The notes: a model not told the origin generated them from the sequence alone. Shown: positions 1,053 to 30,576, counted from the first letter of the stretch. The stretch: 64,000 bases of DNA from Octopus bimaculoides (GCF_001194135.2 NC_068999.1:48712085-48776084); one strand, 5' to 3'. Made by a program: numbers and translations.

Positions 1053-3811
1053 CTGGCCAAACCTTATTTCTGAATTAACATTAATTGGGTGTTCTGCATC
1101 TTGATAAGGGGATCGCTGAAAAAGTAGGGTGTTGAAGATGAAAATGGATGCATGAATTTTATTTAGAAAAAGAAAAAAAATGTCCTGACAGCTAATAACC
1201 AAAAGAAAAATGTTTAAACCGATGTCTTTTACAAGCCACAATATTCTACATATGGCATATACCCCCATTTCACCTAACATTAAGCAGGATGATACTTAAT
1301 ACTCCTCTTGGAAAGAATACAGATTTATGCAAGTAGTTTTCCCCTTGGGAGGAATTGAACCAAGCATTAAAAGCTAACAAAATAGCCATCAATTCTACAT
1401 CACTGCTTCTGCTCACAGCAGTGAATTATACCTCTGGCAAGATGTGGACCATCAATTCCTCAGATAGTTATTTTGTATCTGTGGAATTCTGGTTTAGGCA
1501 CCCCATATAACACCTCCGTAACTTTTTTATTTTGAGTAATTTTCAAAAAATTCTTTGCATCTTTGTGTCCTGCACATGGGAATTCACAGGATGATGAAAA
1601 AAAAAAGGCATTTTTAACCCTACCCATCAAATCCTAAAACTACCATTAAAATATGGACAGTCCAATTTTTTTGCTTAAATTCCAGTAATGGACCACGTTT
1701 GGGTGTATCATCATTCCAATAAATGTGGGGGTTTTTTTTGGGGGGGGGGAATATTCAAAAACATCAATATATGCAAGAGTGACAAAGAAAAGAGGAAGGT
1801 ATCAAGTGGTCGTGGGATATGCTAAAAGCAGGGTAAATCGCCCTTAAATCACACACGTTTATAATCTAACATAAATCTAAAAATACATAAAAACGAAAAG
1901 ATTTTTGTATATTCTTACACTGAACGGTATTATTATGATGGTTCCTTGATATTTTGTGTCTTTGATAGCTCGTGGAGTGCGGTCGGAGAGTTGTATGAGA
2001 TTTCTCTGTCTATCCACTCGGTAAAGTTCAAACCTTTTACCTTCAAGTACAGGATAGATACTAATGAGGTACTGGAGGAAGCGGTCTTCTTTTTGTTTAA
2101 GGCACAGGTAAGTTTTTCTGGGAACTCCATTTATATAATCTTGGCTAGGAAACCCTGAAAACAAGAGAATTATAAAATTATCTGCTAATAGTAAAATATT
2201 TAACAACATCAGAATCATATATAGTGTCCATTTTCCATGCTGGCATGGGTTAGACAATTTGAATAGAACTGGTAAACCAAAGAGCTGCATCATTTTTGCC
2301 AGTTGAGTGGACTGGAGCAACGTGAATGAAGATTTGATTCGACTAAAGGCGGTGCTCCAGCATGGCCGCAGTCAAATGACTGAAACAAGTAAAAGAAAAA
2401 AAAAAAGAAAAGAAAAGTATGAAAAGATACCTCAAAAAGAGAAATAAGAAAGAAAAAAAAAACCAATAAACTCACCATAACCTTGGGTCTGGTAGGAGCG
2501 CACAATCTCTTGCTCAAGGGGGTCACTTGACGTAAATTTGGGCATTTTTGCATACATATCCGGCAAACAAAATAGAAAGCATCGAAAGAACTCTTTTTCC
2601 TTTGGTCCCCTTTTCATCTTCTCCCTTGGTAAACGATGACGTCTGTGCAACATGTAAGGCAAGTTGAATGCTCCTTTATCACCCATGGCACGTTTCGCTG
2701 GAGCACCATCGAACTGTAAGTCATTCAAGGTGGACATTGAGTACGTCGGTGAACTCCTGCATGTGGTGGTCGGCCAATACGGTAAAGTAACGTTTGTGCT
2801 GACACCTTCAGTGTTCGAGTGAGATATGGCTACGGTGGTCAACGAAGCATTTTCTTTCACCTGTGGAGATAGTTGAAGAGATTGTTGTAGTGATTGATTG
2901 GATGAATGCAGTTGTTGCAGTTGTTGTAATTGATGTTGTAATTGATGCAACTGTTCTGAATGATAATGATTTTGTTGTTGTTGTTGTTGTTGGTTTTGTT
3001 GTTGCTGATTTTGTTGTTGTCGTTGTTGATGATGATGCTGCTGATTTCTTTGTTGTTGTTGCTGTTGTTGATGGATTTGATGGTGGTGGTGATTCTGTTG
3101 CTGTTGTTGGTGGGGATGATGCTGACTTTGTTGTTGCTGTTGTTGTTGTTGATCATGGTGATGTAGCTGGGTTTGCTGTTGTGACTGTTGTTCAGGTTGC
3201 TGATGTATTTGTTGTTGCTGCTGTTGATGCTGCTGCTGATGATGAATCTGTTCTGGTTGATGTTGCTGATGTTTGGATTGGATCTGTGATGACTGTGAAA
3301 TTTGTTGCTGTGGGGCAATATGAGGTTGCTGTGGCTGTAGAGTTTTTTGATTAGAATTACCTCCCTGGGACTGGTGGCTCAGAGATGCTTCAGACTGTTG
3401 AGAATTTTGAAGGAGTTGTTGTTGCTGATGTTGAGGTGATGCTGGCTGTGGTGGTAGCGACTGTGGTGATGAAGTTGATGGCTGATGTGGATTTTGTGAT
3501 GAAGGTGGTATTGACTGTGATTGGTGTTGCTGTTGTTGTTGTTGTGGTTGTTGTGGTGGTGGTGGTGGTGGTGGTGGTGGTGGTGGTGGTTGTGAAGGTT
3601 GCTGAGAAGATGCAGTAGAAGCCTGCTGTATCTGTGGCATTAAGTTAATCAGAAGTCTGGCTACTTCAGCCACAGCATTGTTCATGGGAGAGGAATTCAC
3701 AGGAGCTGCAGTTGAACCATTAGAAACAGTACCAGCTGTAGTCGTTTGTGGCGCATTTTGCTGGGAGAATAGGTTAGCTAACTGCATAAAGAGTCTTGAA
3801 TTCTCTTCCAT
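1053..3811 (-). CDS. Gene A: uncharacterised protein with Q/H/P-rich low-complexity region, basic patch and a domain shared with gene B. CDS exons 3811-2476, 2154-1919, 1115-1053; 3' end probably outside the window
   Basis: ATG at 3811 lies 26 nt after an acceptor (ctatttatttcag, exon starts 3837). Exon 1 ends TATG|gtgagt (1336 nt, phase 1). Exon 2 starts ttttcag|GGTTTCCT and ends AGT|gtaaga (236 nt). Exon 3 is ctttttcag|CGATCC...GGCCAG|gtaaac (63 nt, RSPYQDAEHPINVNSEIRFGQ). All junctions keep frame, and exons 1-2 align ungapped to gene B with the same intron positions. Confidence 0.88.
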
Positions 3812-4819
3812 TTTCTACAATTAAATATTCCCTAGATCTGAAATAAATAGAAATTGAGACCAACATCATAAAAACTTAGAAACTTCAAAAGAATGTGAAA
3901 TGATCCCTGTTTCTGGAATGGTGAAACTCAAAGCAGATAAAGCTATAAATATTGTAAATATTTGATTGTCGAGGTGCAGTCAAGATCATGAGATTGTGGT
4001 TTTGATTTCTGGACTGGGTAGTGCGTTGTGTTCTTCACATTGCTCCAGTTCACTCAACTGGCAAAAATGAATAATCCTGTGACAGACCAGTGTCTCCTTC
4101 AGAAGACAAATAAATATGCAATAAAATTCAGGAATCTTGATTAGGGAAGAACTTTTGATCCTTTTCCTTTTGAAATACTAGATTAAAAACCTTGAGATAG
4201 AAAGTATTATCTGCTTAGAATTTCACCATTCCCAAAAAAGTAAAATTAAGATAATTTTAATCATGCCAATTTCCAAATTAGCTTTGAGTACCCTCATCCT
4301 TCATTCTTGAATTAGAATAGGTGTTGCAAAAATAATTAGAATTATGAGAAGATTTATGCTTGGAAGTTAAGAAGTTGCTTCTTTTTTTTTTCTTAAACAT
4401 TGGCAGCAAGTAAACAAACTTGTAAAGGATGAGTAGCATTATTGAAATTCACCCAAGTGCAGCTGGTACCTGCAGGGATAAAAGACAAACACGACCTTAA
4501 CCCATTACCTACCAGTGATCGCATATGGGATCACTTAAAAATTACAAATTTCGTAATTATCTGTCAATATTTACACATATCTAACCTTTTTGCTATATCT
4601 ACTAGGTATATTTCTCTGATATTCAAATGAGGTTTGCTAATTTTTCACCCAATATCTCGCTTATTTTTATTTAAAATGTTATTTTGATCATTCCAGCATG
4701 TTTCTAAGGCTGTTTTATGCTAGATTCATTTGACTAAAATCCTTCAAGGTAGTGCCCCAGCATGGCCACAGTGTAATGATTGAAACAAGTAAAAGCTAAA
4801 AGATAATCCTTCTTCTCAC

Positions 4820-4912
4820 CTTAGAGTAGAGTATTAAGTGGAGCATCCACCTGGAAATGACAGGTTGTTCAAACGTATGTGTGTGTGTGATCTCTTAATC
4901 AGATTCCTTTAC
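4820..4912 (-). other. Possible 5'-UTR exon of gene A
   Basis: Minus-strand acceptor cttttattttcag| at 4913 and donor ctaag|gtgaga at 4819; no coding signal. Based on splice-site pattern only. Confidence 0.35.
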
Positions 4913-6200: not shown

Positions 6201-6229
6201 AATTTGCATGCAGAGAGACCTTGAATGCC

Positions 6230-6690: not shown

Positions 6691-9600
6691 GTGAGGTCCA
6701 CAATGGAGTACTGACAAAAGTAACGATAAAAGCTGTGAATGAGAAACTCAATGGAAGGATTTGGCTGAAATTGGTAGCATTACAGACCAGGTTTCTGTGG
6801 AGATGTGGAACTGTATGTCCGAAAGTATTTGCTATGTGTAAAACTAATACCACTTCACACAGGGGACATGTGAAATTAGATTGAAAGAGATTAAAGCATG
6901 GATATCTGTATGTAAGGATCATGGATGTGCCAAGAATTATACAGCTCTTAAGAATTAAGAATCATTATCATCATTATATGTCTATTTTCCATGCTAGCAT
7001 GGGTTGGACAGTTTGACAGGAGCTGATAAGGCCAAGGGCTGCACCGGGTTCCATAGTCTGTTTTGGCTTGGTTTTTACAGCTTGATGCCCTTCTTTACAC
7101 CAACCACTCATGCGCCAGAGCAAGTTGTTTTACACCTATTACACTATTTTTTTCTTTTTCTTTTTTTCAGCTCGGGTCAAACACTATAGTTTAAAGGCCA
7201 TGGACTGACGATGTGGATTTTCCGAGCCCTCTTCCCCACCCCCCTTTCGCGAGCGCACATTTTTTTTTCATATTCGTTTAAGGCAAGTTGTTTTACACCA
7301 ATTTACACTATTTTTCCTTTGTTTTTGTGCTCGGGTCAAACGCTTTAGTTTAACCTTAACGGTTAGTCTAACTGTTAATTCTATATAGAGAAGATGGTCC
7401 CAGCCGGAATGCTTTTGATAACAGGTTTGCTCGATACAGATTAAACAATAACATTTTAGTTTTACCAGCAAAACGTCAAAAGACTGCATCCAAATAAGTG
7501 ATAAAATATGTTTTAGATAAATATAATATATTTATCAAAAGCTGTTGAAAAAAAATTATCAGAAATGTTAAACTTTTCGATACAACTCGTACTGCATATG
7601 CGAGGTTCTCTCAGTTTTAGGCACTAGCAGACAAAAACTTAATGTTTCACTCTACAGTGTGTTTAGAACATCTTTCTGAAGCAAGTTTTGTCAAGACAAT
7701 GAAATACCTTCGTAAGCTAATCATTAAAACATTGTGAAATATTGATCCAAACCAATTTCTTGAGAATTATAGGCAGCAACTAGTTAATGGTCGATCAAAA
7801 TCCGATAAGACATTTTGTTGCAGTAACTTCGCGAGAAAACATTAGTATCATTTCAAGCGTGTCTTCGATGATGATGATTATGATCATAATGATAATAATA
7901 TGGTAGGATTAATAACATAGTAGTTATCCATCTAATTTTTGGTTGTCCGTTGAAGGATTTCATATCAAACTAGCGTGCGTGCTTTACAAACATGAAGCGC
8001 ACCTCTTTGAGGAAGTAATTTTAAAGACCAATGGGTCACAAAATAATGAACTCTTAGATCAACACCCAAACAAATGAATTAATAGTGACTCTAATAAAGG
8101 AAAATCTGATTCGAATACAAAGAAAACTGGCCCCAAAAGTTGGCAGTTTCTCGGTAAACACAGGGCAATGCAGCTTGCATATGTTTACGTGTATATACTT
8201 TAAAAAAAAAACAAGTTCCAAGAATTGGAATTATTAGATCTAAAGTAGAATTTTAAATCCAATATAAATCGATGATAAAGAAAATAGTTTTCAGTTATTA
8301 CCTGACACTTTTTTCTGTTTTTCGTTTCGGCGGCCGGTGGTTTTATTCTTTTTATTACTTTTTTTTTTCCGAATTACATTCTCGTTCATATATTCTTCAC
8401 GCCGTCCAAATTCTGTGAATCGAATTTTTATATATATAGTTTCATGTTGTGCACATAAATACAACGAGGATACGTTCTTTATATAAGCTAGTCAAACAAG
8501 ATTTAATCGTTGTATTATAAATTCGTATTGGGACGATGGAATAGCAGGAACTGAAAGGTGACTTGAAGTGCCTTCCGGTTATTAGTTACGTCCCTTTACG
8601 CTCCGAGTTCAGTTTCTGTTGAAGGGTCCACTTTACCTTTCACGATTCTGCCATCCATAAAATAAGTTCCAGCTTCATATATATATATGTATGTATATAT
8701 ATATATATGGATATTTATTTATATAAGGGCATTATATAAATAAATATATATTACGGGAATAAATGATGGATTTTTTCCCTTATGAGGCTTTTTTCACGCT
8801 AGCTACTTGATAAATTCTTGTAAAAGAATTCATCCTATTATTGAATTTATATATATGGATGGATATATATATATATATATATANNNNNNNNNNNNNNNNN
8901 NNNNNNNNNNNNNNNNNNNNNNNNNNNNNNNNNNNNNNNNNNNNNNNNNNNNNNNNNNNNNTATGTATATATTTTTTTTTCCGACTAAATAAGAAGATGC
9001 ACTCGCTACAAATGTATTTGGCCAGTGATTCGAGTGTTACAAATTATGATAAATAACAAATAAATTATTATAATTACTAATTATTATCTTACAATTGATA
9101 TTCCCGATAATAAGATTTATTACTAAAAAGGGGGGGGGGACGAGAGTAAAATTTGAAAGATAAATAAAGGAATGAGTGAAATATATAAAGCATGTTGCTA
9201 ATAAAGAAAAGCAACAACAATATGAAAATAAAAACGATCAAAAAAAATCAATAAATGCTATGGCTTCGAAGGAGATAAATTAATTACTGATCTTTATTCG
9301 TTAGAATAGAGGATGAAAACAATTGCAATTGCGAAATGCTTTTCAGCTAAATACTGTTTGGCAATTATATTTGATAACATTTTGTATGAAATTGAGTTTT
9401 TTGGGGTTTTTTTGTGAAATTATTTGTACTTCTTTTCCAAACGGTTGACAATGATGGTTCGTATATATGAGTTGACAATGACGATTCGTGTATATAAGTC
9501 CCCAAAATCCTTGAGGTGACTGAAAACGATGTTACTAGAGAAAATAAGTGAAAAATTGTTTCTGCCTCATCGTATATTTGAAATGTGAAAAGTTTCGAAA

Positions 9601-11096
9601 CTAGAATTATAACAAGAGTGAAAAAATAAAATCAATGGAAAAAAAATTTTATGAATTAATTTGATAAGAAAATTTTAAGTTTTGCAGCAGCTGTAATTTT
9701 ATTCTTGTTGATTGTATTTTTCAGCACTATTAAATTTTAATAGCGCGTGTTTAAAAAACTAAAGGAAATTTAATGTGTGTGTAAGCAATTTCATCTAAAT
9801 CACAGTAGTGGGTAGGTGTAGCCCTCCCTACGTTGATGGTATGACACGTTATATAGTAGCTTTTTAAAAGGCTCTCGTTCGTAGTAATTACATATTATCT
9901 AATAGATATTTATATTGAGTGTACCATAAGCTATTCACATTAATGTAAAAGAAAAAAAGACATCATTCACTATAACTCTCATTTGATAAATACAATTATT
10001 TGTATTTGTTTTTCTTATTGAATTTTAGATTAATCAAAATGTTAAATTAAAAACCTGTTAATTATATTTTTATAGACGAATAATGATTTCATAATTATAA
10101 TTATCGTTATTAATAATACAATGATGATGATGATCATTGTCTGTTTCGATAATAGAGATATGGGCCTATAATAATACAAGGGACTTACTATAACACATGG
10201 AGATATTCTTAATGGATAAAGGGAGTAGTTCTTGATTAGAAGACAAATGTAATTTAGTTCCAGCCTTGACGTTGATTGCTGTAGTTATTTCTATATCAGA
10301 TATAATGCTTGGTCAAGACAATAGCGTCATTTTCGTTTAATATGAAGAAAGCTTAATTGCTTTTGACCAAGGATTAAACGACGTTAACCTAGTATACACT
10401 GGAGCTTACGGTTATAATTGTGGTCAGCTATTGAAAATAAATGCATGCTTTTCTTTACCGTTGTTTAATAAGAAAGTGAATTATAAGCAAATATATAGAG
10501 AAAGAGATTTGAAAATTAAACTAAAATATAGCAATAACTGTTGTTAGTTGTAATTATACATATAAATAATTTAATATATGGTTTAACTTCCGTAAATAGC
10601 CTTTCTGTCCACTACTACTATTACAATTGTAATAATAATCAGTAGACATTGATCAGGCCTTATGGTTTTTTCACTCCTGCCTATCGAATCCATGATCAGG
10701 TTTCAATTCCGGATGATAACCATCATGACGCTGATATCCTTGAGAAAAGCATGAACAATAATTATTACCATGGTGTTCTTTCGATTTGACTCGAAAAAGC
10801 AAAACATTGAAATCGACTCTTTCCGTAAAAAGCACGTTGACTTGTCAACTGTCAGTTGACGAAATGGGAGGAGGAGAAAGCTAATGGGTTATACGTGCGT
10901 GTGTTCTTGTTCCTCTGTCTGTGTGTACATGCTAATGTTGGTGTATACATATCTGTTTATCTAAATTCCTATAATAAAAATGGAAAAAGAGGAACAAGGT
11001 ATAGTGGAATGGAAGGTTTTATGATACCTGTGGAGTATCTCCTTCTCCCATTATAATTGTTTTGTAGTTTCAAGGAGCTGGAACAGGTCACCAATC

Positions 11097-12067
11097 TGTA
11101 ACGTCCATGTGAAGCGAGGTGATGAGAATGGCTCCTTAGCACATCACACGGTCAATGCAATGAATATAAATAGTACAATGCATATATGTGCCAGAGGGAA
11201 ATAAGAGACACAACAGGGTAGAATGTTTAAGAGAAGATTTATTGATATTGGTAACGTGTGATTGTGTGTGCATCATATATACAGAATAACAGACAGGCCA
11301 TCACAAGAACAAGATGTATGCATATGTGGGCATAATATGTATGTTAAGAACATATAAGGATGGCGATGAAGAAGAGACAGTGAAAGCGTCTATAGCCATC
11401 AAAGTGAGGAGTAAGTTTATAGGCACAAGAATGATAAATAACAGTTTGTAGTCAATTGTACACGATAGTTGTAATACTGTATCAAGTAGCGGCGATGAGG
11501 CAGAGCCGGTTATGGTACATGTCGTATGTGAAGTTGTGGCTGTGATGCTGCTGCCTGGGTTACTTGGTATAGGAGTTCTCGCAGGTTGTATATTCGCTGT
11601 TGATCTATGGTGAAGTAATTCATGAACAGTGGAGTGTTGTAACCAGGGCAAGTTGCTTGTTGAGGTGTGTACGTAGAGAGATGTTGGCGTTAGGATGAAT
11701 GATGGTGACAGAGATGGAGGTCACCATATGATGTTGGACGAAGTTGGTGAGTCTCCCCGTGGCTGCTGTTGTGTTGTCGCTGGAACTGGCAGTGTCTTGT
11801 GTGGTCAATGGCTAGACCCTAAGGGTCTGGAACCGAAAGACATCGAGACAAGGAGAAGCTAGGGTTTTATAAGAAGTTGTAGGCTCAAAGCAGGGTAGAA
11901 AACACATGTTACCTTATTTGAAGGCTGCGATTGGTTGGGTTTTGGATGTCAACTGGTGAAATAAATACATTCTCCTGACTTTGTCTTTATATTCTATATA
12001 CTTCTCGTGAAATAATCTTCACTGATTGGATTAACTGGATATCAACTGCTTAAGATTCTACATTACA
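11097..12067 (-). mobile_element. LTR (about 970 bp) with adjacent primer-binding-site remnant; likely orphan 5' LTR of a Gypsy-type element
   Basis: Minus strand begins TGTAA (12067) and ends TTACA (11097), with TATAAAA at 11871-11865 and AATAAA at 11243-11238. TGGTGACC (11093-11086) follows 3 nt after the end. No TSD found. Confidence 0.55.
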
Positions 12068-12174
12068 CTTCTCTGTGTTGGTTTGCTATGGGATTTGTAG
12101 CCTGGTCCACTGAAGGAGCTTTTTTTGTGATTACCTTCAGATTAGATAAATCCATATATTGTGCATTAAATATG

Positions 12175-12210
<36 letters not shown>

Positions 12211-12949
12211 CATATATATATAATGTATGATATAATAGATTCATGACATGAAAAACAGGCAATAGTTAGCAACAGTAGGCATCTAGCTCTATAATAATGC
12301 ATAATATATTCATGTAAGCCAATCTAAATATAGGCAAGATTAAACACTAACATTCAAATTAAACAACAAAGAAACACATAAATCTATGTACATTTGTATC
12401 GGTATTAATAGTAAACCTATATGTATGTATGTATGTATGTGTTTGTGTTGTGTAAATATACGAGGGTCCAGAGTTGTAGAAACATTCTTGAATAGTTGAC
12501 TTCATATCTCTTCCTTACTCATATTTATTTTTGTAATTAAAAGGATCTTGAAAAATATTTTATTATTTACATGCAAGCGGCTGAGGACTCCACAGGCACA
12601 TATACCCTTAATGTAGTTTTCAGAGAGATTCAGCATGACAAAGAATGCGACAAGGCCAGCACTTTGAATTACAATTCTTGTTGGGGTAGAAGAGACAACA
12701 TTCTACAAATCCTTTTGATTGAGGATACAATTCTATATTTCTATGGACATAGCTTAGTAGATGAGAATGTTGGTTAATGCAGCGCAATCATTTAGAGGTT
12801 CTGAGTTCAATCCCAGGCAAGGCACTAAGGTAATTCACAAAAAAATCAAATGAAGTAAAAAAAAATGTCATGAAATACAGAGAGTGAAATCAGAACAGCG
12901 TACTCCTGTAGATCAAATAAAGTGTTAGGTTTGAAACTCCAATTCAACA

Positions 12950-13045
12950 TCTGAGTTCAACACCACAAGACATCTGAAGAAGGCTGGAGAGTATAACAGC
13001 TGAAATGTAGTGAAAATAACAATCAAGATAAGAACACCAGCCTGA
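12950..13045 (+). mobile_element. Third, partial copy of the hammerhead-bearing SINE tail
   Basis: gacatCTGAAGAaGGCTGgagagtataaCAGCTGAAAtgtagtg (12969-13012): core retained, stems I and III weakened. Confidence 0.65.
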
Positions 13046-13073
13046 CTAGTATAAACATGATTTCTTCCATTAA

Positions 13074-13229
13074 CCCTTTAGTATTTAAACTGACCAGACC
13101 TGGCTTCTTAAATCTACTCTACAATGTCATGCTAAAAATATACAATCACATCTTAGAAATCTCAAAGTCACAAGATAATATGTGATCAATAAGTATTGCA
13201 TTTGGCAGAGGAATCTGAATCCTGAAAGG
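13074..13229. mobile_element. piggyBac-type MITE, internally deleted copy of 5130-5363
   Basis: TTAA|CCCTTTAGTATTTA...AAAGG|TTAA with internal similarity (ctacaatgtcat.ctaaaaatatacaa). Further fragments at about 24345-24419 and 60245-60540. Confidence 0.75.
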
Positions 13230-14212
13230 TTAAAAGAGAAGAGTTTTGTTGCTCAGTTTCAAAACTATTATAAGTCACTTGAATCTTCGCCATATGGTCT
13301 TTCAATCATCCTACACTAGATTTTATTGTGTGGGGAACCATGTTGGTGAAAATTCGCTTCAGCTGAATTATGTGGAAACATGTCACTGAATTAGAGGAGT
13401 AAGTCCATGTCAAAAATAACTTCTTGATAGCTTTTAGCAATTAAATATTCATTCATAATTTCAATACAGCCAAAATATCTCAACACATGGCTCCTCTAGT
13501 GACTGCAGATAGTACAAGGGAGATAATCCTTTCATAATATGAGGTGGGATTAGAAATATGAAATTGAAATTAAGGAATTATTAGAAAAAAAATGCATAGA
13601 ATTTACATATTTAATTTTGTTTGTTTGGTTTTGTTTACATATGTTTATGATGTTCATAAAATTTCTAGTCAGTGTAATCATATATATATTTCTTTATTGC
13701 CCACAGGGATGGGGCTAAACAAAAGACAAACAAGGACAGAGAAAGGGATTAAGTTGATTACATCGACCCCAGTGCATAACTGGTACTTATTTAATCAACC
13801 CTGAAAGGATGAAAGGTAAAGTTGACCTCGGCGGAATTTGAACTCAGAACGTTCAATACCGCTAAGCATTTTGACCAGCATGCTAACGATTCTGCCAACC
13901 CACCATAGTCATATATATATATAATGCTGTTTCATTCTTTTCAAAAATTGTCAGCATGGGAGACTTAAAAAAAAATCCACAGCATAACCACGACAGGCTG
14001 CTTTATTATTATTGTTGAATACCCAGGTAACAAATCTTCCTCTGTCTCAGCTCCTTATGTATTTTGGCATTCATCATCATCATCATTATAATTTAATGTC
14101 CATTTTTCCATGTTTGTATGGGTCAGACAGAATTTGTTGAGGCAGATTTTCTACGGCTGGATGCCCTTCCTGTAGTCAACACCCACTTACTTCCCACACT
14201 CTTAACCACTAT

Positions 14213-14485
14213 GCCATATGTCCATAGTGATTAAGAGCGCAGGCTACTAACCCCAAGATTCCAAGTTCGATTCCAAGCAGTGACCTGAATAATAATAACA
14301 ATGATGATGATGATGATGATGATAACATTGTAAAATACCTTAGGAATGAGAACCCTGGTTCAAAATTTCCCCAAGACACCTGATGTAGGCTGGAGGGTAT
14401 ATCAGCCAAAACGTGTTAACAACAAACAAGATGAGGACAAATATCTGTCAAATGTAAATAATGTAGATAATGTAAATAATGTACA
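14213..14485 (+). mobile_element. Second copy of the hammerhead-bearing SINE, core mutated
   Basis: Colinear with 32947-33184; the core reads CTGATGT...CAAAAC instead of CTGATGA...CGAAAC. Confidence 0.8.
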
Positions 14486-14639
14486 TAATTCCCCATCTCT
14501 TAAATATAGAACTGCTGAAGGAAAGGTTTGCAGCAAAATGTAAAATGAAATTATAAGGACAAAGTTGCCAAATCTTGCTGGAGAAATTGTTAAAATCCAT
14601 ATTGGTATAGGTTTTGAATGAACTGTTTTCACCACTACA

Positions 14640-15400: not shown

Positions 15401-15422
15401 AAATCTTGAAATAATATTGAAT

Positions 15423-15973: not shown

Positions 15974-16009
<36 letters not shown>

Positions 16010-16188
16010 TACACATACCACTTTTACAAGGAAAAGGTCAACAATGATTTTTCTTGTACATTGAGTCATAATTCAGATAATCTTCTCCTTTGTAGAAGTC
16101 AACATAAAGAATTCCANNNNNNNNNNNNNNNNNNNNNNNNNNNNNNNNNNNNNNNNNNNNNNNNNNNNNNNNNNNNNNNNNNNNNNNN

Positions 16189-16225
<37 letters not shown>

Positions 16226-17984
16226 TTGATAGATAGATAGATAGACAGGTATGCATGCAAGCATACACACTTAACTCTTATATACTCTCAGATATACCTG
16301 CATGTGTGTGTGTCTGTGTGTGTCTGTGTGCTTACGTGCATGTGGGTTCAGCAAGGGAGGTAAATAGGTATAACATATAATTTAGAAACTAACCAATCAT
16401 TTTCTTCGTACGAAATGTGGCTGAATAGGTTTTTTTTCTATAGTAATACTTACCTTGGATTGTCGGCATGGACAACAATGGAAAGCGACTGAAGAAATTC
16501 TGGATTATTTACCAAAAATATAGTTAGTTGCTGTGATATATTTGGGCAGGTATTTCCTTATAGTCACTGTTTTCTTATTGCAAACTCATTTTACTTGTGC
16601 GATTTCATTTTTGTAAATTAATTCAAATTGGTCTGGGCTGGACATGATTTGATTACTAAGACCAACATGTTCGTTAATTTCTGATAATTCTGTTTTTATT
16701 TTTATATTTCTTCATGTTTATATCGGTATATCGAACCATATTTTCATTCGGTACGAAATCATAATATATTTGTTTAGTCTCTCTGCAAAAGAAAACAATT
16801 TGAATGATCAGATTTCTGCTATCTGTTTGAAAACAAATATTAAGTCCATATAAATATTAGCTGGACTCTCTTGCTATTGGCTTTTTTTTGTTTTTTGTTT
16901 TTTTGTTAATTAACGCATCTGCATGCTACTGGGACTTAATCAGTTGTGAATAACAAATGGTTTGTTTTTCAATTGCCTTATTTTCGAATCCCCTTGTGGT
17001 GTTCCTTAGCAATATTCGTTCGATCGTCCAAATATTTTGATTTCTTCACTAAGTGAAAGTAGATAATGAGAAGTAAATATATACCAGTAGCTATTTTTAG
17101 TTAGAGGAGGGGGAATTCCCTTATCTACTTAAAGTGGTGGTGGTGGTAGTTAACAATAAATAAAAACAATGATTACTTGAGCGGGTTATGTATGAAACCT
17201 TTTGAGAGAATCGTTTTTGTTGAAATCCTAGTTAGCACTGATCGAGTAGGCTTATGATGGGAGGTGTTCCAGCCGTGACCATCCCGTTTTTTCATATCCA
17301 GGTCTACACAATCCAACGTGTCCTTCGTTTTATTAAAGACCGTAGGGATTTGATTCAAGGGAGATTTGGCTGTTATTTCTTGCAGGTTGAGTGACAACAG
17401 AGATGTTCCCTCATTGGCTCGCCCTTAAACGAGAATGGATACAAAGTCTCAGGATATATTGGGGAGAACGAATACAACGAAGTCTCGAATATATCGCATG
17501 AAATACAGGGGTCTTACATTCATACTTTATTTTTCCAAGGGCATTGATGAAGTGACAAATAAAATGAATTTCCATCTGGAAATCGAAACCGGGCCTCTGG
17601 CTCGGATCAGCGAGAAATTACTTACAAACCCGTGTTTTTGCATCAATGATTTTACACATAGGCAACAACTTTGAGATATTTAGAGAAAAAAATTGGTAAT
17701 TTAATTGTTCGTGCCCATAAAAAATTCTTATTGCTTACCGATACCTGCATCTCCTATTATAATTCCATTACCATGTTGGATACTTTAGAGAAATATTTTA
17801 GCCTTTTGTGCGCTACTTCAGCCAACTACTCAGGTTGGACTCCCTAGTTGTCAGACGTTTGTGGGAGGGATCATACCAAGTCGTATTCCATGAGTCCACA
17901 GTTGTTTCCAGTTAAACAACAAAAACTGCCATTTCAACATTTTTTTTTTGCTTCTTTTAGCCATCTCTTAAACGCCGCTAAAAG

Positions 17985-18026
<42 letters not shown>

Positions 18027-18204
18027 GTGTATGTTGTGTGTTAGGGAAATAGAGAATCGAATAATAACAATATTCATTTTTCGAAAACTTCATGTAAAAA
18101 ATAACAAGAGAAATGGTATTGATATTGAAAATGTATTAATTTTTTTCTGATATATATGTGTGTGTGTGTATACATATATTATATATATATGTATATTATG
18201 TGTG

Positions 18205-18268
<64 letters not shown>

Positions 18269-19044
18269 GAGAGAGATAGATATATATATATATACAAGCT
18301 TTTACTTGCATTTCACTCTTAGATTGTGGCCATGCTGGGGCTTCCAAAGAAATGTAGAATTAAACAATATTAATACACACTGAAAAACAATAGCATTATC
18401 ATACACACAAGCACGTATGTATGTATATGTGTATATATNNNNNNNNNNNNNNNNNNNNNNNNNNNNNNNNNNNNNNNNNNNNNNNNNNNNNNNNNNNNNN
18501 NNNNNNNNNNNNNNNNNNNNNNNNNATATATATATATATATATATATAATATGCCCACACTCATACATGATGGACTTCCATACAGTTTTCATCTACCAGC
18601 ACCTTGGATGTTTTTTGCAGTATTTCCAGGCCAGCCAGCATCTTTTTACTAAATTGATACAGGGAAACTACATTTATGTTTGTTTTATGTCCATTTTTTC
18701 CTTGTTAGCATGCACTTGTGGAATATATTATTGAGGCATTGTTTTACAGCTGGATGCCCTTTCTGTTGCTAACTCTTAACTTTCTTTCCAGTAATGAATC
18801 TCGTTTCACATATCTTTGAAGGCATGAAGCAAGTAGATAATTTGTCGACAGAAATTTTAATACCGCTAGTAACTCCTGACTTTCTTAGGATGCAAATGTA
18901 AACAAACAGACTGATACATGCACACCCACAGGCGTATACATACATACATACACACACACACTAGATTTTTTTATTAATGGATATAGGTCATTCAAATTGC
19001 CTATATTTGTAGAGTAACATCCTATTCTTCATCACAGGCAAATA

Positions 19045-19720
19045 ATGGGTTCCAAACAGAAGCAACATGCTGTCACTGAGTTCTTGATAAAGGAAGGGTA
19101 CAGGCTGTCTGGCAGTTACAGAAGGCTACAAGTTGTTTATGGAGGTGACACCATTGACAAGAGAAATGTGCATAAATCTTTGAAGAAATTTAAAGGAGGG
19201 GAAAACAGCTTTGAAGAAAAATCATGCTTTGGGAGCCTATCAATTACAATCACTGGCACAAATTGCCAGCTAGTGGACAAACCCATTCACATAGACTTGT
19301 TACACAACTGGACTGTTATCACAATGCATCACAGAAAATAGTGGAAAACTTTGGGCACTGGAAAATGAGTGTAAAGAGGGAACGTGGTTTGAAAGAGAGA
19401 AGGGTAGAATTCCTTTTAATCTACTGCAAGCATTTGAAGCCAATGAAAACCTGGGGGGGGGGGGTTCCAATCTGGTGATGGGATAAAACATGAACATTGT
19501 CTTTATGATCCAGAAACAAAGGCCCAGTCCAAAGAATGGCATCACAACTTTTCTCCAAAGTCTAAGAAGTTCAAGAGGCTATGATCACCACAGAAAATTG
19601 TGATGATTCTTTTCTTTAATGATTTTCTGAGACACAGCTATACCATGAACAACAAACAACACATTGAGATAGTAAAACAAGCTTAGAGAAGGTATTAGGA
19701 GGCAGAGACTGAATAACAAT
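19045..19720 (+). pseudogene. Mariner (DD34D) transposase remnant, N-terminal and central part
   Basis: KQHAVTEFLIKEG...RRLQVVYGGDTID...FKGGE (HTH region), then frameshifted TGDETW..YDPETKAQSKEWH-like and DFL...T.N...Y.E-like segments. Confidence 0.8.
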
Positions 19721-19740
19721 ATAGTAACAATCCACATTAA

Positions 19741-19840
19741 CCCTTTTGTTACCATATATGTGTTGAAATACGCTATCTTCGTTTCAATTAATTTTGAAAA
19801 TAATGACAGATTTAGTAAAATAACAGTCATTACTTAGCTG
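19741..19840. mobile_element. piggyBac-type MITE left end, second family
   Basis: TTAA|CCCTTTTGTTACC start directly after the mariner remnant; right TIR not found. Confidence 0.45.
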
Positions 19841-19849
19841 GTGTCATCA

Positions 19850-20260
19850 TCGTCACCATCATCATCAGTTTCATTATAAGGTACAACCCATTTACTATGC
19901 TGGCATGGGTTTGACAGGAGCTGGCCAGCTGAAGATTTGCCCAGGTTCCATGTCTGATTTGGTGTGGTCTCTACAGCTGGATGCCCTTCCTAATGCCAAC
20001 CACTTCACAGTGTGTAGTGGGTGCCTTTATGCAGCACTGGCATGGCTGTGTTTACATGGCACTGGTACAAGTGCATTTTATTTGGCACCAGCACCGGCAC
20101 CCATGAGCCCGCAAGATTAAGGATGCAAGGACAACCACATTTTTACTTGGCTTGGCATGTTTTCTCAAGTACAGTGAACTGCCAGGAGTCTCAGTCACCT
20201 GTCATCCCCTCTGTGAATCCCAACATCTGTAGATCCTTTCTCACCACTTCGTCCCACAAA
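19850..20260 (-). mobile_element. RTE-type 3'-tail repeat with (GAT)n end. Many copies: about 2215-2290, 6960-7110, 14075-14200, 21235-21350, 21695-21785, 26570-26780(+), 28870-29160, 31765-31920, 41905-42080, 44380-44560, 50080-50150, 56320-56540, 59455-59620, 60740-60900(+)
   Basis: Recurrent (ATC)n-TTTAA.GTCC..TTTCCATGCT.GCATGGGT...GGATGCCCTTCCTAATGCCAACC motif; boundaries approximate. Confidence 0.65.
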
Positions 20261-20372
20261 ATATAAATTAAGATGCAATTTTTGCTGGAAGATTTTAATT
20301 TAGATCACTTTAAAACAGGAAGTTTGTATCATAGAACCAAGGCCAGTTTCAGGCGGGTTGGTATCAAAAAGA

Positions 20373-20757
20373 GTGGAGGCGCAATGGCCCAGTGGTTAGG
20401 GCAGCGGACTCGCGGTCATAGGATCGCGGTTTCAATTCTCAGACCGGGCGTTGTGAGTGTTTATTGAGCAAAAACACCTAAAGCTCCACGAGGCTCTGGC
20501 AGAGAATGGTGGCGAACCCTGCTGTACTCTTTCACCACAACTTTCTCTCACTCTTTCTTCCTGTTTCTGTTGTGCCTGTAATTCAAAGGGTCAGCCTTGT
20601 TACACTGTGTCACGCTGAATATCCCCAAGAACTATGTTAAGGGTACACGTGTCTGTGGAGTGCTCAGCCACTTGCATGTTAATTTCACGAGCAGGCTGTT
20701 CTGTTGATCGGATCAACTGGAACCCTCGACGTCGTAAGCGACAGAGTGCCAACAACA
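20373..20757 (+). mobile_element. Full-length tRNA-derived SINE (family B), relatively young
   Basis: A box TGGCCCAGTGG, B box-like GTTTCAATTCT, (AAC)n tail, many CpGs retained, and a 13-bp TSD GGTATCAAAA(A/G)GA at 20360-20372 and 20758-20770. Confidence 0.9.
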
Positions 20758-20770
20758 GGTATCAAAAGGA

Positions 20771-21010
20771 TTAACCATGATAATACATAATCAATCACAC
20801 ATATGTGTGGCCACAAATCAGGCTATTGGCAAATTGGGCTTGGCAAACAGTGGAGTGTCTGCCATCCACTGTACAACCTGGATCTGGCACTCTCCAACTT
20901 CTCAACTTCTACCTGTTCAGTCCAGTGAAGAACAGTTTTCAGGGACAATGGTTTAATGACATGGATGATGTCAAAATGGCTGCGAAGTGTGTAACCACCT
21001 GAACCTTTTT
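20771..21010 (+). pseudogene. Mariner transposase remnant, C-terminal part, separated from 19045-19720 by nested insertions
   Basis: Decayed HPxYSPDLAPSDFxLFxPxKNxxxGxxFxDxDDVK motif (ORF track: ...YLFSPVKNSFQGQWFNDMDDVKMAA). Confidence 0.75.
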
Positions 21011-21797
21011 CAAAGAGAATTTGAGAATTAAATTCAACTTTGCTAAAAATTTATCGCTTGTGATGAAGACTATATTGCATTGTACCTTTGTATGGAGAGA
21101 GAGTTTCTCTACCAATATATGCACTTTGAATAACCTATGTCACTTAATGAAGAAGTTATGCTAACTTTCGCATTAATTTTACTATTATACTATGTATGTA
21201 TGGATGGATGGATGGATGCATGCATGTATATCATCATCATCATCATTCAACATCCGTTTTTCATGCTGGCATAGGCTGAATGATTTCTATGGTTGGGTGC
21301 CCTTCCTAATGCCAACCACTCCACAATGTTCTGGGTGCTTTTTGTGACACTAGCACCACCCATACACACACACACACACATTCTCTCTTTTATATATAAA
21401 TTGACATAAACACAAGCACTAATGTTTGTGTGTGTGTGTGAATTTTTTTATTCTTTTATTTATTTCAGTAATTTGACTGCAGCCACACAAAAATATGTGT
21501 GTGATAACTGAAAGAAGCTCATTATATACGTATGTGTGCATGTGAGATGATGTGATGGGTTTCTTTCAATTACCATCTTCCAAATCCATTCACAAGATTT
21601 TGGTTGGCCCAGAACTAGAGTAACATATGCCATTTAATAAGCAGAAACCATGTAGTTTGGAAGCAAACTTCTTAACCTCACAGCAGGCCAGTCGTCATTT
21701 AACGTCCGCTTTCCATGCTAGCATGGGTTGGACGATTTGACTGAGGACTGGTGAAACCAGATGGCTACACCAGGCTCCAATCTGATACATATATATA

Positions 21798-21896: not shown

Positions 21897-21922
21897 GCAT
21901 ATNNNNNNNNNNNNNNNNNNNN

Positions 21923-21980
<58 letters not shown>

Positions 21981-24976: not shown

Positions 24977-27900
24977 ATGGATGACAATACAAAAGTAATG
25001 TTGAAGCTGGCTACTTTCTTAGCTCAGCAGAACAACTCTCGGGTCAACAATACAGGAAACCAAAATCCTCTTACTGAATTGGCTACCCAACTATTGATGA
25101 ATAGCACTAGTGAAACCCTTGCCATACCAACATCTCTGCAATCTCACCCAGCAAAACAACTGCCGTCTCATCAACCAGACAACAGCACCTCTAGCATGTT
25201 TCAAACACAAGCTGCACCAGTGCCTATCTCTCAGAACACTTCATCAAATCACATGAATAATACTTACAGTGTAAATGCTTCATCACTTCAAGGGAACATC
25301 ACAAATACAAAGAGTTCAGTTCCTAGGGCTAATGAGATGATGTCACTGAACAATACTTCAAACAAAGACATGATTCCAGTAGCATCCCCAATCAACAGAG
25401 ATTCTTTTAATGTAATGTCCCCTGTTATGGATCAAGAAAACTTCTCTCCTATTAACAGAGACAATTTCCCCATCAGCAGGGATACATTTAACGTGACAAC
25501 TGCCAACTCTTATCCTATCAACTCACCTATGAATCATGACACATTCACCACAGCTTCTTCTGTCAACCGAGATTCCTTTACAATGTCATCTGCAGTCAAC
25601 AGGGACTCCTATCCTGCAACATCATCTGGAAATTCACTGTCATCATCCCCAGCGACTAACCGGGAAATGTTAACTGTAATGCCGCCAGTAAATAGAGACA
25701 CATTTTCTGCTGCTTCTCCTGTCAACCGAGAAACATATCCCAATAATCCTGCTATGAATAGAGACACCTTTAATGTCAACCGAGACAACATGAGTGGGAA
25801 TTGTCCTGAGACAAGAGATTCATTTTCTTCAGATTGCTCTGCTACTAGAGTCTCCTTTAGTATAACATCACCAAGAAATCGAGAAAATTACACAAATACT
25901 CCAGTTATTGGTCGAGACTCGTATTCTGTAACCTCCCCAGTTAATAGTGACTCTTATGGATCTGGGATGCCAACAAGCCATGAGTCTTACCCAGTCAGTT
26001 CTCCTTCTAACCGAATTTCTGAAGATTCTGCTATGAACTCTTTGAATATGATGCGAGGAGATATCTCCAGAAATACAGCTTTAACAAGAGTTCCTGATGA
26101 GATGAATATGAACCAAATGGAGGATATGGTTGTCACTGGTGGGAGTAGTAACGGTAGTAGTATTAACAGCGGTTTGGGCTCAATCAACAGTTCAATGTCA
26201 TGCAACATGTCTTCCATGAATTCTTCTTCCAATGAAGTGCATATAAACTCTTCAAATAATTGTGCCTATTACAAGCGACCTATACAAGGAGAAAAGGGAC
26301 GATCGTATCCTCAGCCAGTCATACTTCGATCGCGACCTCGTCCTGTTAAGGAGAGGTCTAAAAGAGGTCCCAAAGAGAAGGATTATTTCCGAACTGCTTT
26401 CTTTTGTCTACCAAATGTGACAGCTCGACTACCACGCTTTACGTCCTCTGATCCTCGTGAGCAAGACCTTGTCCTTGATTATCAGAAACAAGGTTATGGT
26501 AAGAAATGTTTTTCTTTCATATTCTTTTAATTAATGCATCCTCCCCTCTCAAAAAATTCCTTGTCTTGCAAGTTACTTGGTGACCCTGCCAGTGCTGGTG
26601 CCAAATAAAAAGCATCCAGTCCAGAGTGTGAAGTGGTTGGCATTCGGAAGGGCATCTGGATGTAAAATCCATGCCAAAACAGATACAGTAGCTGAGGGTA
26701 GTTTTTCTAGTTTGGTGTAGTCTCCTACCTGTAGCATGGAAAATGAATGTTGTTGTTGTTGTTGATGATGATGATGGTGATGGTGATCACTTGATCTAAA
26801 TTAATTTTTCCTTTCACAGGTTTTCCAGCAAAAGACTACTTTGAAGGCAAACCTCAGAAGACTTATATTCGTCTCAGTCATGATGAAGAAAGTTTCCGTT
26901 GCTTTCTGTTAAGTATTTATCCGAAACTTGAGGGAAAGTATTATGAACTTTATAGAATTGATCGGCAGAGAAATTTGGTTCGCATTGAAGCTAAGACCCC
27001 CCGTGGTATCAAGAATGCTAAATACCAAGGAACGATCATCATTTTGCCCTACGTAAGTCTGCAAAGTCAAACTATTTGTATTTGTATTTCATTTAACAGC
27101 ATTAATACACTGGAGAAAGGTATGAACATCATGCAGTCTCTTTATGAAAGTGTTTTATTCTTCTCCATGTTTCAGTCATTTGAGTGTGGCCATGCTGGAG
27201 CACCACGTTGAAGGGTTTTAGTCGAACGAATCAACCCTCAGGACTTATTTCTTAAGCCTAGTTACTTATTCTATTGGTCTTTATTTGCCAAACCACTAAG
27301 CAATTTAATCTTTTTTTATAAACTAAATTATAAATTAAACTTTCTTACTCTTTAATTTAATTTCTTCTTTTGTGTTTTTCTTTTAATTTTTTTTATTTAG
27401 CCTGAAGCTTCAAATCCACCATCAGCTATTGTGCACAACCCAAGTAGTATTGGAGACTTACCTGTCCAGCTATGCAATGATTCCATGGAAAATATTAATG
27501 AAAACAATGAATGTGAAGAAGAAAACATGATACCATCACCAAGTGTCTGTGGTTCCACGCCCCAGCAATCTCCTTTCATGCCACCAAACCATGAAGTAGC
27601 TACATATGATCATAAGGTAACTATCCTTAATATAAATTATCATTGATTGAATTGGCAGAATTGATTAAGTTTCAGATTGAGTTAGTAATATCCATTTACA
27701 CTGTAAGTTGAAATCTCATCATGTTTGTCTTGCATTTCAACCTTGCAGAGCTTTTATCCTGTTAGTCCTCAATACCTAATCTTGTGGTGCTACTAACAGA
27801 CTTTCTGTCTCCCTTTTCAGCCTTCCTTTCTGCAACCATGACTAAATGTCTCACTATTACTATTTTCTACAATTATGTTTGAAAATCTGCTAAAGTTGGC

Positions 27901-28032: not shown

Positions 28033-28067
<35 letters not shown>

Positions 28068-29174
28068 AAATAATAATAATCAGGCATAGGACCTGAAATT
28101 AGGGGGAGAGGGTAGTTGATTACATTGACCCCAGTACTCAACTGGTACTTAATTTATCGACCGCTGAAAGGATGAAAGGCAAAGTCAACCTCAGCGGAAT
28201 ACTACTACTACTACTACTACTACTAATAATAATAATAATAATAATTTCTACAACAAATACTAAATGAAATAAGATAGCAAAATGGCAGCAAGTTTGAAGT
28301 CTGCTATTCCAAGAATACACAAGAAACAACAGAATCAACTGTATCCTGCTACTCCTATTAATTTGTGGCTCCCTGTCACATTATTAAGCAGAAAGAAAAT
28401 CATGCCAAACTAAATATCTTGATAGTATTTAATTTTGTACATCTACATTCTGAGTTCAAATCCTGCCATGTCAACTTTGTATTTGGGTTCATTCAATTGG
28501 TTATACTCCTCTACAAATTTATGGCTCTAAGTCAGTAACAGGAGTAGAGAGGAAGAGATGAATAAAGTATTAATTTATTCCATGTTTTCTACTTCAAAGG
28601 AATCCTACGAGTTATCACCTCCATCTCCAGAACGTGATATTAAACCATTTCAAAGATTTGATTCTGGTATGTATCTGTTAATCATCCTGACACCTTTTTT
28701 TTTGCCACTTTTGAAGACGATGAATTTCAGAATATCACATTATCTTTTTGAGAATTAGTCCTAAGCAGTACTTATCCTATCAATCTCTTTTGACAAACTA
28801 AGCTACTAGGACATAAACAAACCAACACCAGTTGTCAAGTGGTTGTGGGGAAAGACACACCGTTGGATGTCATTCATATATGTATATGACACACATCATC
28901 ATCGTTGTTAATGTTCATATTCCATACTGGCATGGGTTGGATGGTTTGACAGGAGTTCACAAGCTGCTGCAGAGCTGCACCAGGCTCCAGTTGTCTGTTT
29001 TGGTGCCACATAAAAAGCCCCATGTTGATGTCACATCTAAAGCACCCATGCTGGTGCCATATATAAAGAACTGGTTCTAGTTCCTCATAAAAAGCACCCA
29101 GTACACTTTGTAAAGTGGGTTGGCATTAGGAAAGGCATCCAGCTGTAGAAACCATGCCAAGACACACTCATATA

Positions 29175-29210
<36 letters not shown>

Positions 29211-30576
29211 GTGGGCTTCAACATAGTTTCTGCCAGCCAAATTCACTCACAAGGTTATAGTAGAAGACACTTGTTCAAGGTACCAGGCACTGGGACTGAA
29301 CCTGAAACCACCCAGTCGGAAAGCAAGCTTCTTAACCACACAGCATACCTTTAAATTTTTTTTTTTTATATCTTGGTTGTTATTGTCAGGCTTTTGCTTT
29401 ATACTCTTGCACTAGTTCCATTTATTTTCCATTCTCTGATTGATTTAATATTTAGATGTTCCATTTGTATCTAATATCAAATTTTAATTTCTCTTATTTT
29501 CTTTTTGCACAGAAAATTCTGAATTATTTCAAAGAATTTCCCTCATAAAGCAAACTCTTTCTGAAACGAGAAACTTGAAGATGGATAAAAGATCTATTGT
29601 TGGAAATCTGTTGGAGTTGTATCGTGCTGAGCATACCATCTGTAACTATGACATCCGAGTCACATTTAATAATGACCCCAATCTCACTTTATCGAATGAT
29701 CCATCATTTCAAACCCGTCACATGTTCTGCATATTCTGGAAGAAAATTTTCAACAATAATTTTGTCGGAAATGAAGAATACTATCCAGTCATAAGTCCCG
29801 AGGCTGAAGACGATATGTTTGAAATTCTCGGCCGCATTCTCGCTCATGGATTAATATTATGTAACTATTGGCCTATCCAGTTTGCTGTAGCATCAGCCAC
29901 CTACATGCTCTGTCAAGGCTGCTCTGATGAGCTCATTTTGAAATCATTCACCAATTGCCTCAGTGGATTTGATCAGAGGATTGTCATGTCAGCCCTAAAG
30001 GAATCTCGTTCCCAAATTGGAGAACCAACTTTCTCTTCCACTCTAGAAACCAATTTATCAGCATTTCTATGGACTAACGGTTGTCAAATAGACCGACCTG
30101 GTCAGCTTCCTGGTATTTTGTTAAGCATAGCCAGAAGTTTTCTTATATACCAACCATACTGGGCACTTGTGAAGCTGAAGAAAGGAATGGAACACTGCAG
30201 CAATAAAGTATTCAAAGATTGTTCTGAAAGTGATGTTGAAAACTTATACAAAACATTAACACCTGAAGCATCTCAAATTTGCAAATTAATCAAGTATGAG
30301 TTTAGTCAAGAAGAATCTCACCTGGAAATTGAGAAAACATTACAGACTTACTTAGAAAAATTACTTTGGGAAATGTCATTAGTTGAACTTGCAAACTTGT
30401 TACAATTGTGGACTGGTGTGAACTGCTTGTCACAACAAACATTGTTTGTGAAATTTGTGAACACTTCAGATCAGTTACTGTTTCAGAATTATAAATCTCT
30501 GCTTCGGATCCCTCGCAAAATACAGACATTTAAAGAATTTACAGATTCCATTCAATTACTTCTGGATGGAACATGA
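24977..30576 (+). CDS. Gene B: 1033-aa protein with N/S-rich 12-aa repeats, basic patch, domain shared with gene A and a C-terminal degenerate HECT-like domain. CDS exons 24977-26498, 26820-27052, 27401-27616, 28600-28666, 29513-30576
   Basis: Acceptor ttttcttttcag| at 24932 precedes the ATG. Junctions: TATG|gtaaga, ctttcacag|GT, TAC|gtaagt, ttttatttag|CCT, AAG|gtaact, cttcaaag|GAA, TCTG|gtatgt, tttttgcacag|AA. Exon lengths 1522+233+216+67+1064 = 3102 nt = 1034 codons with no internal stop. AATAAA at 31125-31130. Confidence 0.9.
29590..30576 (+). other. HECT-like domain (G2E3-type) of gene B with degenerate catalytic motif
   Basis: Motif order matches HECT: IRVTF, FW..F, ILGRILAHGL..P..F (N-lobe), then LLQLWTG...FVKF...LLRIP...F.EF (C-lobe). 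The GxDxGGxxRE signature is replaced by SNDPSFQTRH and PxAHTC by LLFQNY. Recognised by eye; no HMM was run. Confidence 0.7.

Follow-up and report, generated by a model that had tools for sequence, protein, structure and literature searches.

Class IV of the HECT ubiquitin ligases comprises UBR5, G2E3 and a set of fast-evolving 'G2E3-like' groups that includes GL-Metazoa, and for G2E3 of human and mouse the HECT has been described as non-functional (Grau-Bove et al. 2013, PMC3673628). Here, we describe two genes of Octopus bimaculoides, referred to as gene A and gene B, that lie head to head in a stretch of 64,000 nt (GCF_001194135.2 NC_068999.1:48712085-48776084). This whole stretch is called the window, and positions are counted from its first letter. 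We consider it probable that A and B are cephalopod-specific duplicates of an unnamed mollusc gene whose product combines a cysteine-less HECT domain with a conserved domain on its N-terminal side (the N-domain), and that the encoded proteins are most likely non-catalytic pseudo-HECTs.

As in the HECT ligases (PF00632), the last approximately 350 aa of the gene B product form a full-length two-lobed fold at the very C-terminus, and the closest solved structures are those of UBR5, followed by NEDD4 and HUWE1. Unlike in these enzymes, the catalytic cysteine is replaced (by Tyr1006 in gene B), and the domain falls below the Pfam threshold in the octopus protein, in the proteins of other cephalopods that resemble gene A (A-type, as opposed to B-type) and in the orthologue of the mussel Potamilus; for these two reasons we have not filed the family among the HECT ligases. 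With G2E3 and GL-Metazoa the family has in common a very divergent C-terminal HECT, and the best structural match of gene B, UBR5, is the other class IV member. The N-terminal partner, however, is a different and unnamed domain. A preliminary description of the locus, made from the sequence alone, had likened the HECT to the G2E3 type, a label that is unsupported, as Pfam detected no PHD- or RING-like zinc fingers in the full-length B, A-type and Potamilus proteins or in ten long relatives. These ten contained no Pfam domain beyond HECT except for unrelated extras in three, and no protein named G2E3 was present among the named matches. The N-domain itself may be like the β-grasp modules (the UBX of p47, PB1, the RAWUL of RING1B, the ubiquitin-like domain (UBL) of USP4/11/15, and Atg8/GABARAP) in the topology of its structural model, but unlike them in carrying an insertion of approximately 45 residues, in its weak structural matches and in giving no sequence-profile match.

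The gene models were rebuilt from open frames and splice signals, and comprise the following features.

1053-1115, minus strand: gene A coding exon 3, RSPYQDAEHPINVNSEIRFGQ, with acceptor ...tttttcag and donor gtaaac
1919-2154, minus strand: gene A coding exon 2, carrying the remainder of the N-domain (GFPSQDY...IIIIPFS), with a phase-0 donor after it
2476-3811, minus strand: gene A coding exon 1, from the ATG at 3811 to a phase-1 donor at its end; N-terminal helical motif (3811-3755), Q/H/P-rich disordered region, basic patch (KRGPKEK begins at 2614) and the first part of the N-domain as far as GYG
3812-24976, no strand: spacer between the divergent ATGs, with four assembly gaps, (TA)n microsatellites and a mariner-type helix-turn-helix (HTH) fragment
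24977-26498, plus strand: gene B coding exon 1, from the ATG at 24977 to a phase-1 donor at its end; N-terminal motif (24977-25033), S/N-rich disordered region, basic patch (KRGPKEK at 26360) and the first part of the N-domain
26820-27052, plus strand: gene B coding exon 2, carrying the remainder of the N-domain (GFPAKDY...IIILPY), with a phase-0 donor after it
27401-27616, plus strand: gene B coding exon 3, linker (PEASNPPS...YDHK)
28600-28666, plus strand: gene B coding exon 4, 67 nt, ESYELSPPSPERDIKPFQRFDS, also present in the B-type transcript P0001
29513-30576, plus strand: gene B last exon, the entire degenerate HECT (residues 680-1033) and the stop codon
30490-30492, plus strand: Tyr1006 codon of gene B, aligned with the catalytic Cys of active HECT domains

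Gene B is complete, with five coding exons, GT-AG borders throughout and a product of 1033 aa that is letter-for-letter identical to the representative library protein P0007 and to the product of an annotated gene on CM046619.1 of GCA_001194135.2. The preliminary description overlooked the small exon at 28600-28666; this exon is required because the frame into the last exon depends on it. Gene A also has GT-AG borders at all of its exons in the window and runs on to the left, past window position 1; its exon 3 is matched by the linker in two A-type transcripts, P0002 and P0003.

From KRGPKEK onwards, the two products are identical at 75 of 125 positions without a gap, in line with the earlier hand count of 75/124, and BLASTP aligned them with 83 identities over 148 aa (E 1e-54). 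The N-terminal helical motifs are identical at 7/19 positions, and recur in the orthologues of Potamilus and Dreissena. In both genes, a phase-1 intron splits the final Gly codon of GYG (...TATG|gtgagt in A, ...TATG|gtaaga in B), and a phase-0 intron comes directly after the N-domain, past IPFS in A and past LPY in B. Between the motif and the basic patch lie unrelated low-complexity sequences: residues 61-370 of A contain 37% Q, 13% S, 11% P and 10% H, with runs of Pro and His, and residues 61-430 of B are rich in Ser and Asn (20% S, 14% N). The common motif, the matching phase-1 and phase-0 introns and the unrelated intervening sequence were thus all found as first described.

A first database search with the conserved part of gene B yielded six proteins. 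One is of the B type (P0001, 986 aa, 72% identical), two are of the A type and full length with the same C-terminal domain (P0002 and P0003, 813 and 795 aa), one, from the mussel Potamilus streckersoni, is annotated as hypothetical (P0004, 834 aa), and the remaining two are truncated B-type models (P0005 and P0006). Over gene B exon 2, identity to P0001 is 98.7%. A profile built from five members was then compared with 1.84 billion representatives and gave 1203 hits, of which the best 150 were read taxonomically. Matches with the full architecture came from the bivalves Dreissena, Tegillarca, Saccostrea, Pecten, Mytilus, Solemya and Potamilus and from the abalone Haliotis, mostly one per mollusc species. 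That architecture consists of one or two short N-terminal helical motifs, a disordered region, the basic K-R-G-P-K-E-K patch, the domain of approximately 125 aa, a variable linker and the HECT. All of the named orthologues are called 'uncharacterized protein LOC...' or 'hypothetical protein', which agrees with the proposal that A and B are paralogues in an unnamed family; no well-characterized named family with one-to-one orthologues was found. Searches with two further alignments (A2 and A3) returned 9 and 3 proteins, respectively, without useful names.

P0001 and P0003, one of each type, lie on intron-free contigs of approximately 3 kb from the same run, SRR27666071, which we take to be RNA-seq; in another cephalopod, therefore, transcripts of both paralogues exist and are spliced in agreement with the gene models given here. 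P0003 was present on 21 contigs, and the three listed came from three different runs.

The identity of the C-terminal domain emerged from profiles and structure. The Pfam scan detected no HECT in the last exon or full-length product of gene B, nor in the A-type P0003 or the Potamilus protein P0004 (E<=0.01), and a direct sequence search of PDB with the last exon and with a five-sequence profile gave chance matches only, among them the poxvirus 16L protein, Cmr6 and SKP2, which were dismissed. Pfam matches to Ndc80, Nrap and SNU71 at E>0.003, obtained with the shared domain, the last exon and full-length proteins, were likewise set aside as noise. The family profile, by comparison, collected 530 proteins at E<=1e-10 and reached hundreds of proteins of approximately 330 aa with E values of 1e-20 to 1e-80 spanning the entire domain; 37/48 aligned members were positive for Pfam HECT (PF00632) at E<=0.001. 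The joint profile A2 matched AREL1 in PDB over the C-lobe (3.9e-13) and HUWE1 over the entire domain (1e-11), followed by E6AP, UBR5 and NEDD4. When a nine-sequence alignment of Cys-less members only (A4) was compared by hhalign with an alignment of Pfam-positive relatives only (A5), the probability was 100% with E 2.8e-44 over 328 columns. The orthologue of Haliotis shows a full-length Pfam HECT match that is sub-threshold, at 17.9 bits against a cut-off of 23.9.

An AlphaFold2 (AF2) model of the gene B domain had a predicted local distance difference test score (pLDDT) of 95.8 and a predicted template modelling score (pTM) of 0.92, and in a Foldseek comparison with PDB its top 50 matches were all HECT domains, the best being UBR5 (E 5e-12, TM 0.66). 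Judged by these profiles and models, the C-terminal domain, called HECT-like in the preliminary description, is a true but degenerate two-lobed HECT, and its degeneracy is common to the mollusc clade. Both MAFFT and hhalign aligned the catalytic Cys of ...R-R-P-I-A-H-T-C... with Tyr1006 of gene B. In the relatives this column holds Tyr (P0001), His (P0002, P0003 and the Potamilus protein P0004) and Ser or Arg (another two relatives, read off one column at a time). A column of C/S at +2 had been considered as the catalytic site, and was dropped after column-by-column alignment and hhalign. As the catalytic cysteine is gone, no thioester with ubiquitin would form at this position, and a non-catalytic 'pseudo-HECT' is the most likely reading of the protein.

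The N-domain had no Pfam family, either when scanned as the shared stretch of approximately 125 aa or within full-length proteins. Its signature begins with K-[RP]-G-P ... [FY]-x-L-P ... Q-x-x-G-[YF]-G-[YF]-P ... Y-P-x-L ... Y-R-x-D ... and ends with T-P-R-x-x-K-x-x-K-Y-Q-G-x-[IV]-I. Because the K-[RP]-G-P core belongs to the conserved domain, the basic patch is more than a nuclear-localization signal; the nuclear location put forward earlier had been read from this patch, whose core proves to be the edge of a conserved domain, and is unsupported. The AF2 model of the N-domain (pLDDT 89.7, pTM 0.81) has the order β1, a helix-plus-loop insertion, β2-α-β3-β4-short α-β5, with the signature Q-x-x-G-[YF]-G-[YF]-P, which includes the GYG motif, held in the insertion between the first two strands. 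Foldseek matches were weak, with a best E of 8e-3, TM of 0.35-0.45, approximately 10% identity and none at E<=1e-3, and the best matches in PDB were nearly all β-grasp folds (UBX of p47, PB1, RAWUL, USP UBL and GABARAP). Among viral structures (BFVD), the best few matches were ubiquitin-like, and again weak. The earlier suggestion of a ubiquitin-like module is, therefore, compatible with the AF2 model but falls below significance in Foldseek, and we regard a ubiquitin-like fold as plausible and unproven.

The N-domain also stands beside a Cys-bearing HECT in Hydractinia (P0065), Sanderia (P0038), Mytilus (P0026 and P0051) and on a Tara Oceans contig (P0099). The occurrence of the domain N-terminal to HECT domains in other invertebrates, as proposed in the preliminary description, was thereby borne out, but its proposed occurrence in fish was not, with none among the named matches. 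As the pairing is found in cnidarians, it is older than the molluscs. The N-domain can also stand alone, since a Mytilus coruscus protein (P0064, CAC5409682.1) has two tandem N-domains without a HECT. In a protein of Tegillarca granosa (P0009, KAJ8314875.1), the last approximately 25 residues of the N-domain (VKTPRA.KDL.Y.GTLVVI) are repeated four extra times at residues ~110-240, which reflects either a tandem exon duplication or an artefact of assembly or annotation.

A neighbour-joining tree of the N-domain and C-terminal domain placed the cephalopod A and B sequences together (bootstrap 99.5%), gene A of the window with the A-type transcripts (99.5%) and gene B with the B-type (100%), and supported the Cys-less mollusc clade at 93.5%. 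From these groupings, the duplication is specific to cephalopods and older than the split between the octopus and the species of the transcripts. The gene structure is also conserved beyond cephalopods: the Potamilus locus has five coding exons, as in gene B, with the HECT-like domain wholly in the last exon and introns inside G-F-G|Y-P and directly after I-I-P-Y, matching the octopus positions. These two points are also where read-through fragments found among the representatives break off. In another cephalopod assembly (locus L007, ENA ERZ21867824, ctg121759l), no A-type exon was found within the 10-kb flanks, which reach only exon 1 of the B gene, a negative that says nothing on whether the head-to-head order is conserved. 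The sequence there (10001-21533) continues for more than 10 kb past B exon 1 without exon 2, where the octopus intron measures 321 bp, and contains open reading frames (ORFs) with a faint zf-CCHC match and a DUF7047 match, possibly a mobile-element insertion in the intron.

Ratios of non-synonymous to synonymous substitution rates (dN/dS) between the octopus and other cephalopods were unusable, as dS was saturated or undefined, and the pair P0002 and P0003 (dS approximately 0.5, unsaturated) was used instead. For this pair, dN/dS was 0.088 in the N-domain, 0.080 in the HECT-like domain, 0.15 in the linker and 0.39 in the disordered region. Between gene B and P0001, dN in the N-domain was 0.037, with dS saturated. 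The low ratios, together with a dN of only 0.037, exclude decay, and a dN/dS near 1 can be set aside for two domains that both lie at approximately 0.08. As for the disordered regions, described earlier as swappable, these evolve at a much higher rate than the modules on either side. That both folded parts are so strongly constrained suggests a role in binding or regulation.

The preliminary description had viewed the pair as domesticated transposon cargo, that is, an ORF with N-domain and HECT that was captured, duplicated and kept. Distant relatives lend this some substance: those with the N-domain and HECT look multi-copy or intron-poor, Mytilus has several different proteins, one of them with two tandem N-domains (P0026, P0051, P0064 and P0186), a single-exon ORF of 454 aa is present on a marine-metagenome contig (P0099) with a cluster-mate on 20 contigs, and the family profile search drew in hundreds of short HECT-only ORFs. 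The octopus genes, however, have four or more introns at positions in common with the unionid mussel Potamilus, the family is represented mostly by single 'LOC' orthologues per mollusc species, and dN/dS is approximately 0.08. The pair has no transposase, reverse transcriptase or terminal repeats linked to it, the nearby mariner HTH and reverse-transcriptase fragments being unrelated; beside P0099, the one relative whose surroundings were viewed, there was no transposon gene or annotated neighbour; and any capture would predate the split of the sampled mollusc classes. We therefore judge domestication an unlikely origin for the pair, for which the transposon idea is unsupported; it could apply solely to the distant, possibly multi-copy relatives. 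Less credible still is the explanation that the head-to-head adjacency is a scaffolding artefact at a gap, or that one copy is a decaying pseudogene. Four N-run gaps do lie between the two ATGs (8884-8961, 16117-16188, 18439-18525 and 21903-21922), and continuity across them is unproven, so that the ATG spacing of 21.2 kb and, strictly, the adjacency too are estimates. These gaps are nevertheless short, and each has a (TA)n microsatellite next to it on one side or both, as is typical of unresolved microsatellites within a scaffold. No exon or coding intron of A or B contains a gap, and so no reading frame rests on them. Both genes have intact frames and canonical splice sites, for each there is an orthologue that is transcribed and subject to purifying selection, and their paralogy is independent of adjacency.

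A different objection grants the fold and disputes its inactivity: the HECT-like domain could still be a ligase, through another nucleophile or without a thioester. The constraint across the domain, including the C-lobe (dN/dS 0.08), would fit such an activity, and pseudoenzymes with 'migrated' catalytic residues are known (PMC10211241). Two cysteines come into question, and both count against our preferred reading of a non-catalytic pseudo-HECT. A Cys at +2 from the catalytic position in P0001-P0003 could be a relocated nucleophile, but the same position is Ser in gene B and Potamilus. Cys984 of gene B (30424-30426, W-T-G-V-N-C-L; C-domain position 305, consensus W-T-G-x-N/D-C-L) is invariant in the nine-sequence Cys-less alignment; since the column is Cys in some Cys-bearing relatives and Thr or Leu in others, it looks structural. 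The catalytic position itself varies (Tyr, His, Ser or Arg), unlike a conserved substitute. HECT enzymes carry a conserved Phe four residues from the end of a C-terminal tail. In alignment A2, which is uncertain at the extreme end, the cephalopod proteins stop short of the tail of the relatives (...FDSI, ...WEYTL), which some bivalve members keep. Taken together, a retained ligase activity seems quite improbable to us. Further points weigh on the same side as the two cysteines. HECT homology rests on profiles, gene B giving no direct Pfam or PDB sequence match, and the AF2 model is corroboration and no independent proof because its alignment contained genuine HECTs. The dead HECT of gene A is taken from orthologous transcripts, its own C-terminal exons being beyond the window. 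The spread beyond molluscs is read from the best 150 of 1203 hits, and the scaffold or adaptor role is purely our inference.

The two paralogues would differ in essence only in their disordered regions. In gene B, the short motif [SP]x[VI]NR[DE][STN][FY] occurs in 11 copies (approximately 25385-25939, residues ~137-321), against 0.05 expected from shuffling. There are 13 copies in P0005 and 11 in P0006, both truncated B-type orthologues, and only 3 in P0001, and the motif is absent from A-type and bivalve proteins. No DNA-level tandem repeat was detected under the array, and hence the motif itself seems to be maintained; it looks like a binding motif. In exon 1 of gene A, the Gln/His and Pro tracts (2967-3226 and 3516-3594) are imperfect trinucleotide arrays with units CAA/CAG (TTG on the plus strand) and CCA/CCN. 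The disordered region is approximately 350 aa long in gene A and approximately 150-200 aa in the A-type transcripts of other cephalopods, and the tracts, which are much longer in the octopus, suggest a lineage-specific repeat expansion. The divergence between the disordered regions suggests that A and B may have different partners or tissues.

Any 5′ untranslated region (UTR) exons and the promoters of A and B must lie in the spacer at 3812-24976. For the intron that the preliminary description placed shortly before either ATG, a good putative acceptor is present, from which an exon would begin at 3837 in gene A (26 nt before the ATG) and at 24932 in gene B (45 nt before the ATG). The 5′ UTRs of orthologous transcripts did not align with the window, the divergence being too deep (dS>2). 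The spacer also contains a degenerate mariner/Mos1-type transposase fragment (19018-19338, plus strand; Pfam HTH_48, E 1.3e-3, below the family cut-off). Downstream of gene B, an unbroken frame of 303 codons (36085-36993, minus strand) encodes a complete domain of SARAF, the regulator of store-operated calcium entry (PF06682, E 2.7e-82), and is also annotated publicly as a gene of 293 aa. A reverse-transcriptase fragment (38028-38294, minus strand; RVT_1, E 3.6e-7) is a retroelement remnant close to an assembly gap. Further on, a short open frame (61459-61600, plus strand) gave no Pfam match, and looks like the first coding exon of a homologue of SND1 (Tudor-SN).

The ancestor of the family was probably a ligase with an N-domain and an active HECT, such as persist in cnidarians and mussels. 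After loss of the nucleophile, the conserved HECT surfaces would bind, as a single module with the N-domain, either an active ligase or an E2, ubiquitin or a ubiquitin-like protein, and the disordered region would recruit partners. After duplication, the folded module would have been kept while the disordered region diverged, to poly-Q/H in A and to NRD(S/T)(F/Y) repeats in B. A broader and more doubtful account, which we offer tentatively, is that the N-domain is a new β-grasp-type domain that has been the obligate partner of one divergent HECT clade since before the split between cnidarians and bilaterians, that the combination became a conserved non-catalytic adaptor in molluscs, and that cephalopods duplicated it and gave the copies differing recruitment regions, poly-Q/H in A and, in B, 11 conserved motifs for one specific partner. 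On this account, both the pseudo-ligase family and its domain would be new.

The pair is not a new kind of system. If our reading is correct, it would account for a number of mollusc proteins labelled 'uncharacterized LOC', which routine annotation leaves unclassified. Conserved but catalytically dead HECT domains have been little described, an example being G2E3, whose HECT is reported as non-functional (PMC3673628). The mollusc family would represent a natural case in which the whole HECT fold has stayed under strong purifying selection, in bivalves, abalone and cephalopods, after loss of the nucleophile, and in which its constant companion is a domain that Pfam does not name. As such, it would offer a testable entry into non-catalytic scaffold functions of the HECT fold, and a candidate β-grasp module for the catalogue of ubiquitin-system domains. 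Lastly, the cephalopod duplicates, with shared folded modules and unrelated disordered regions, would make a case for the divergence of paralogues through disorder.

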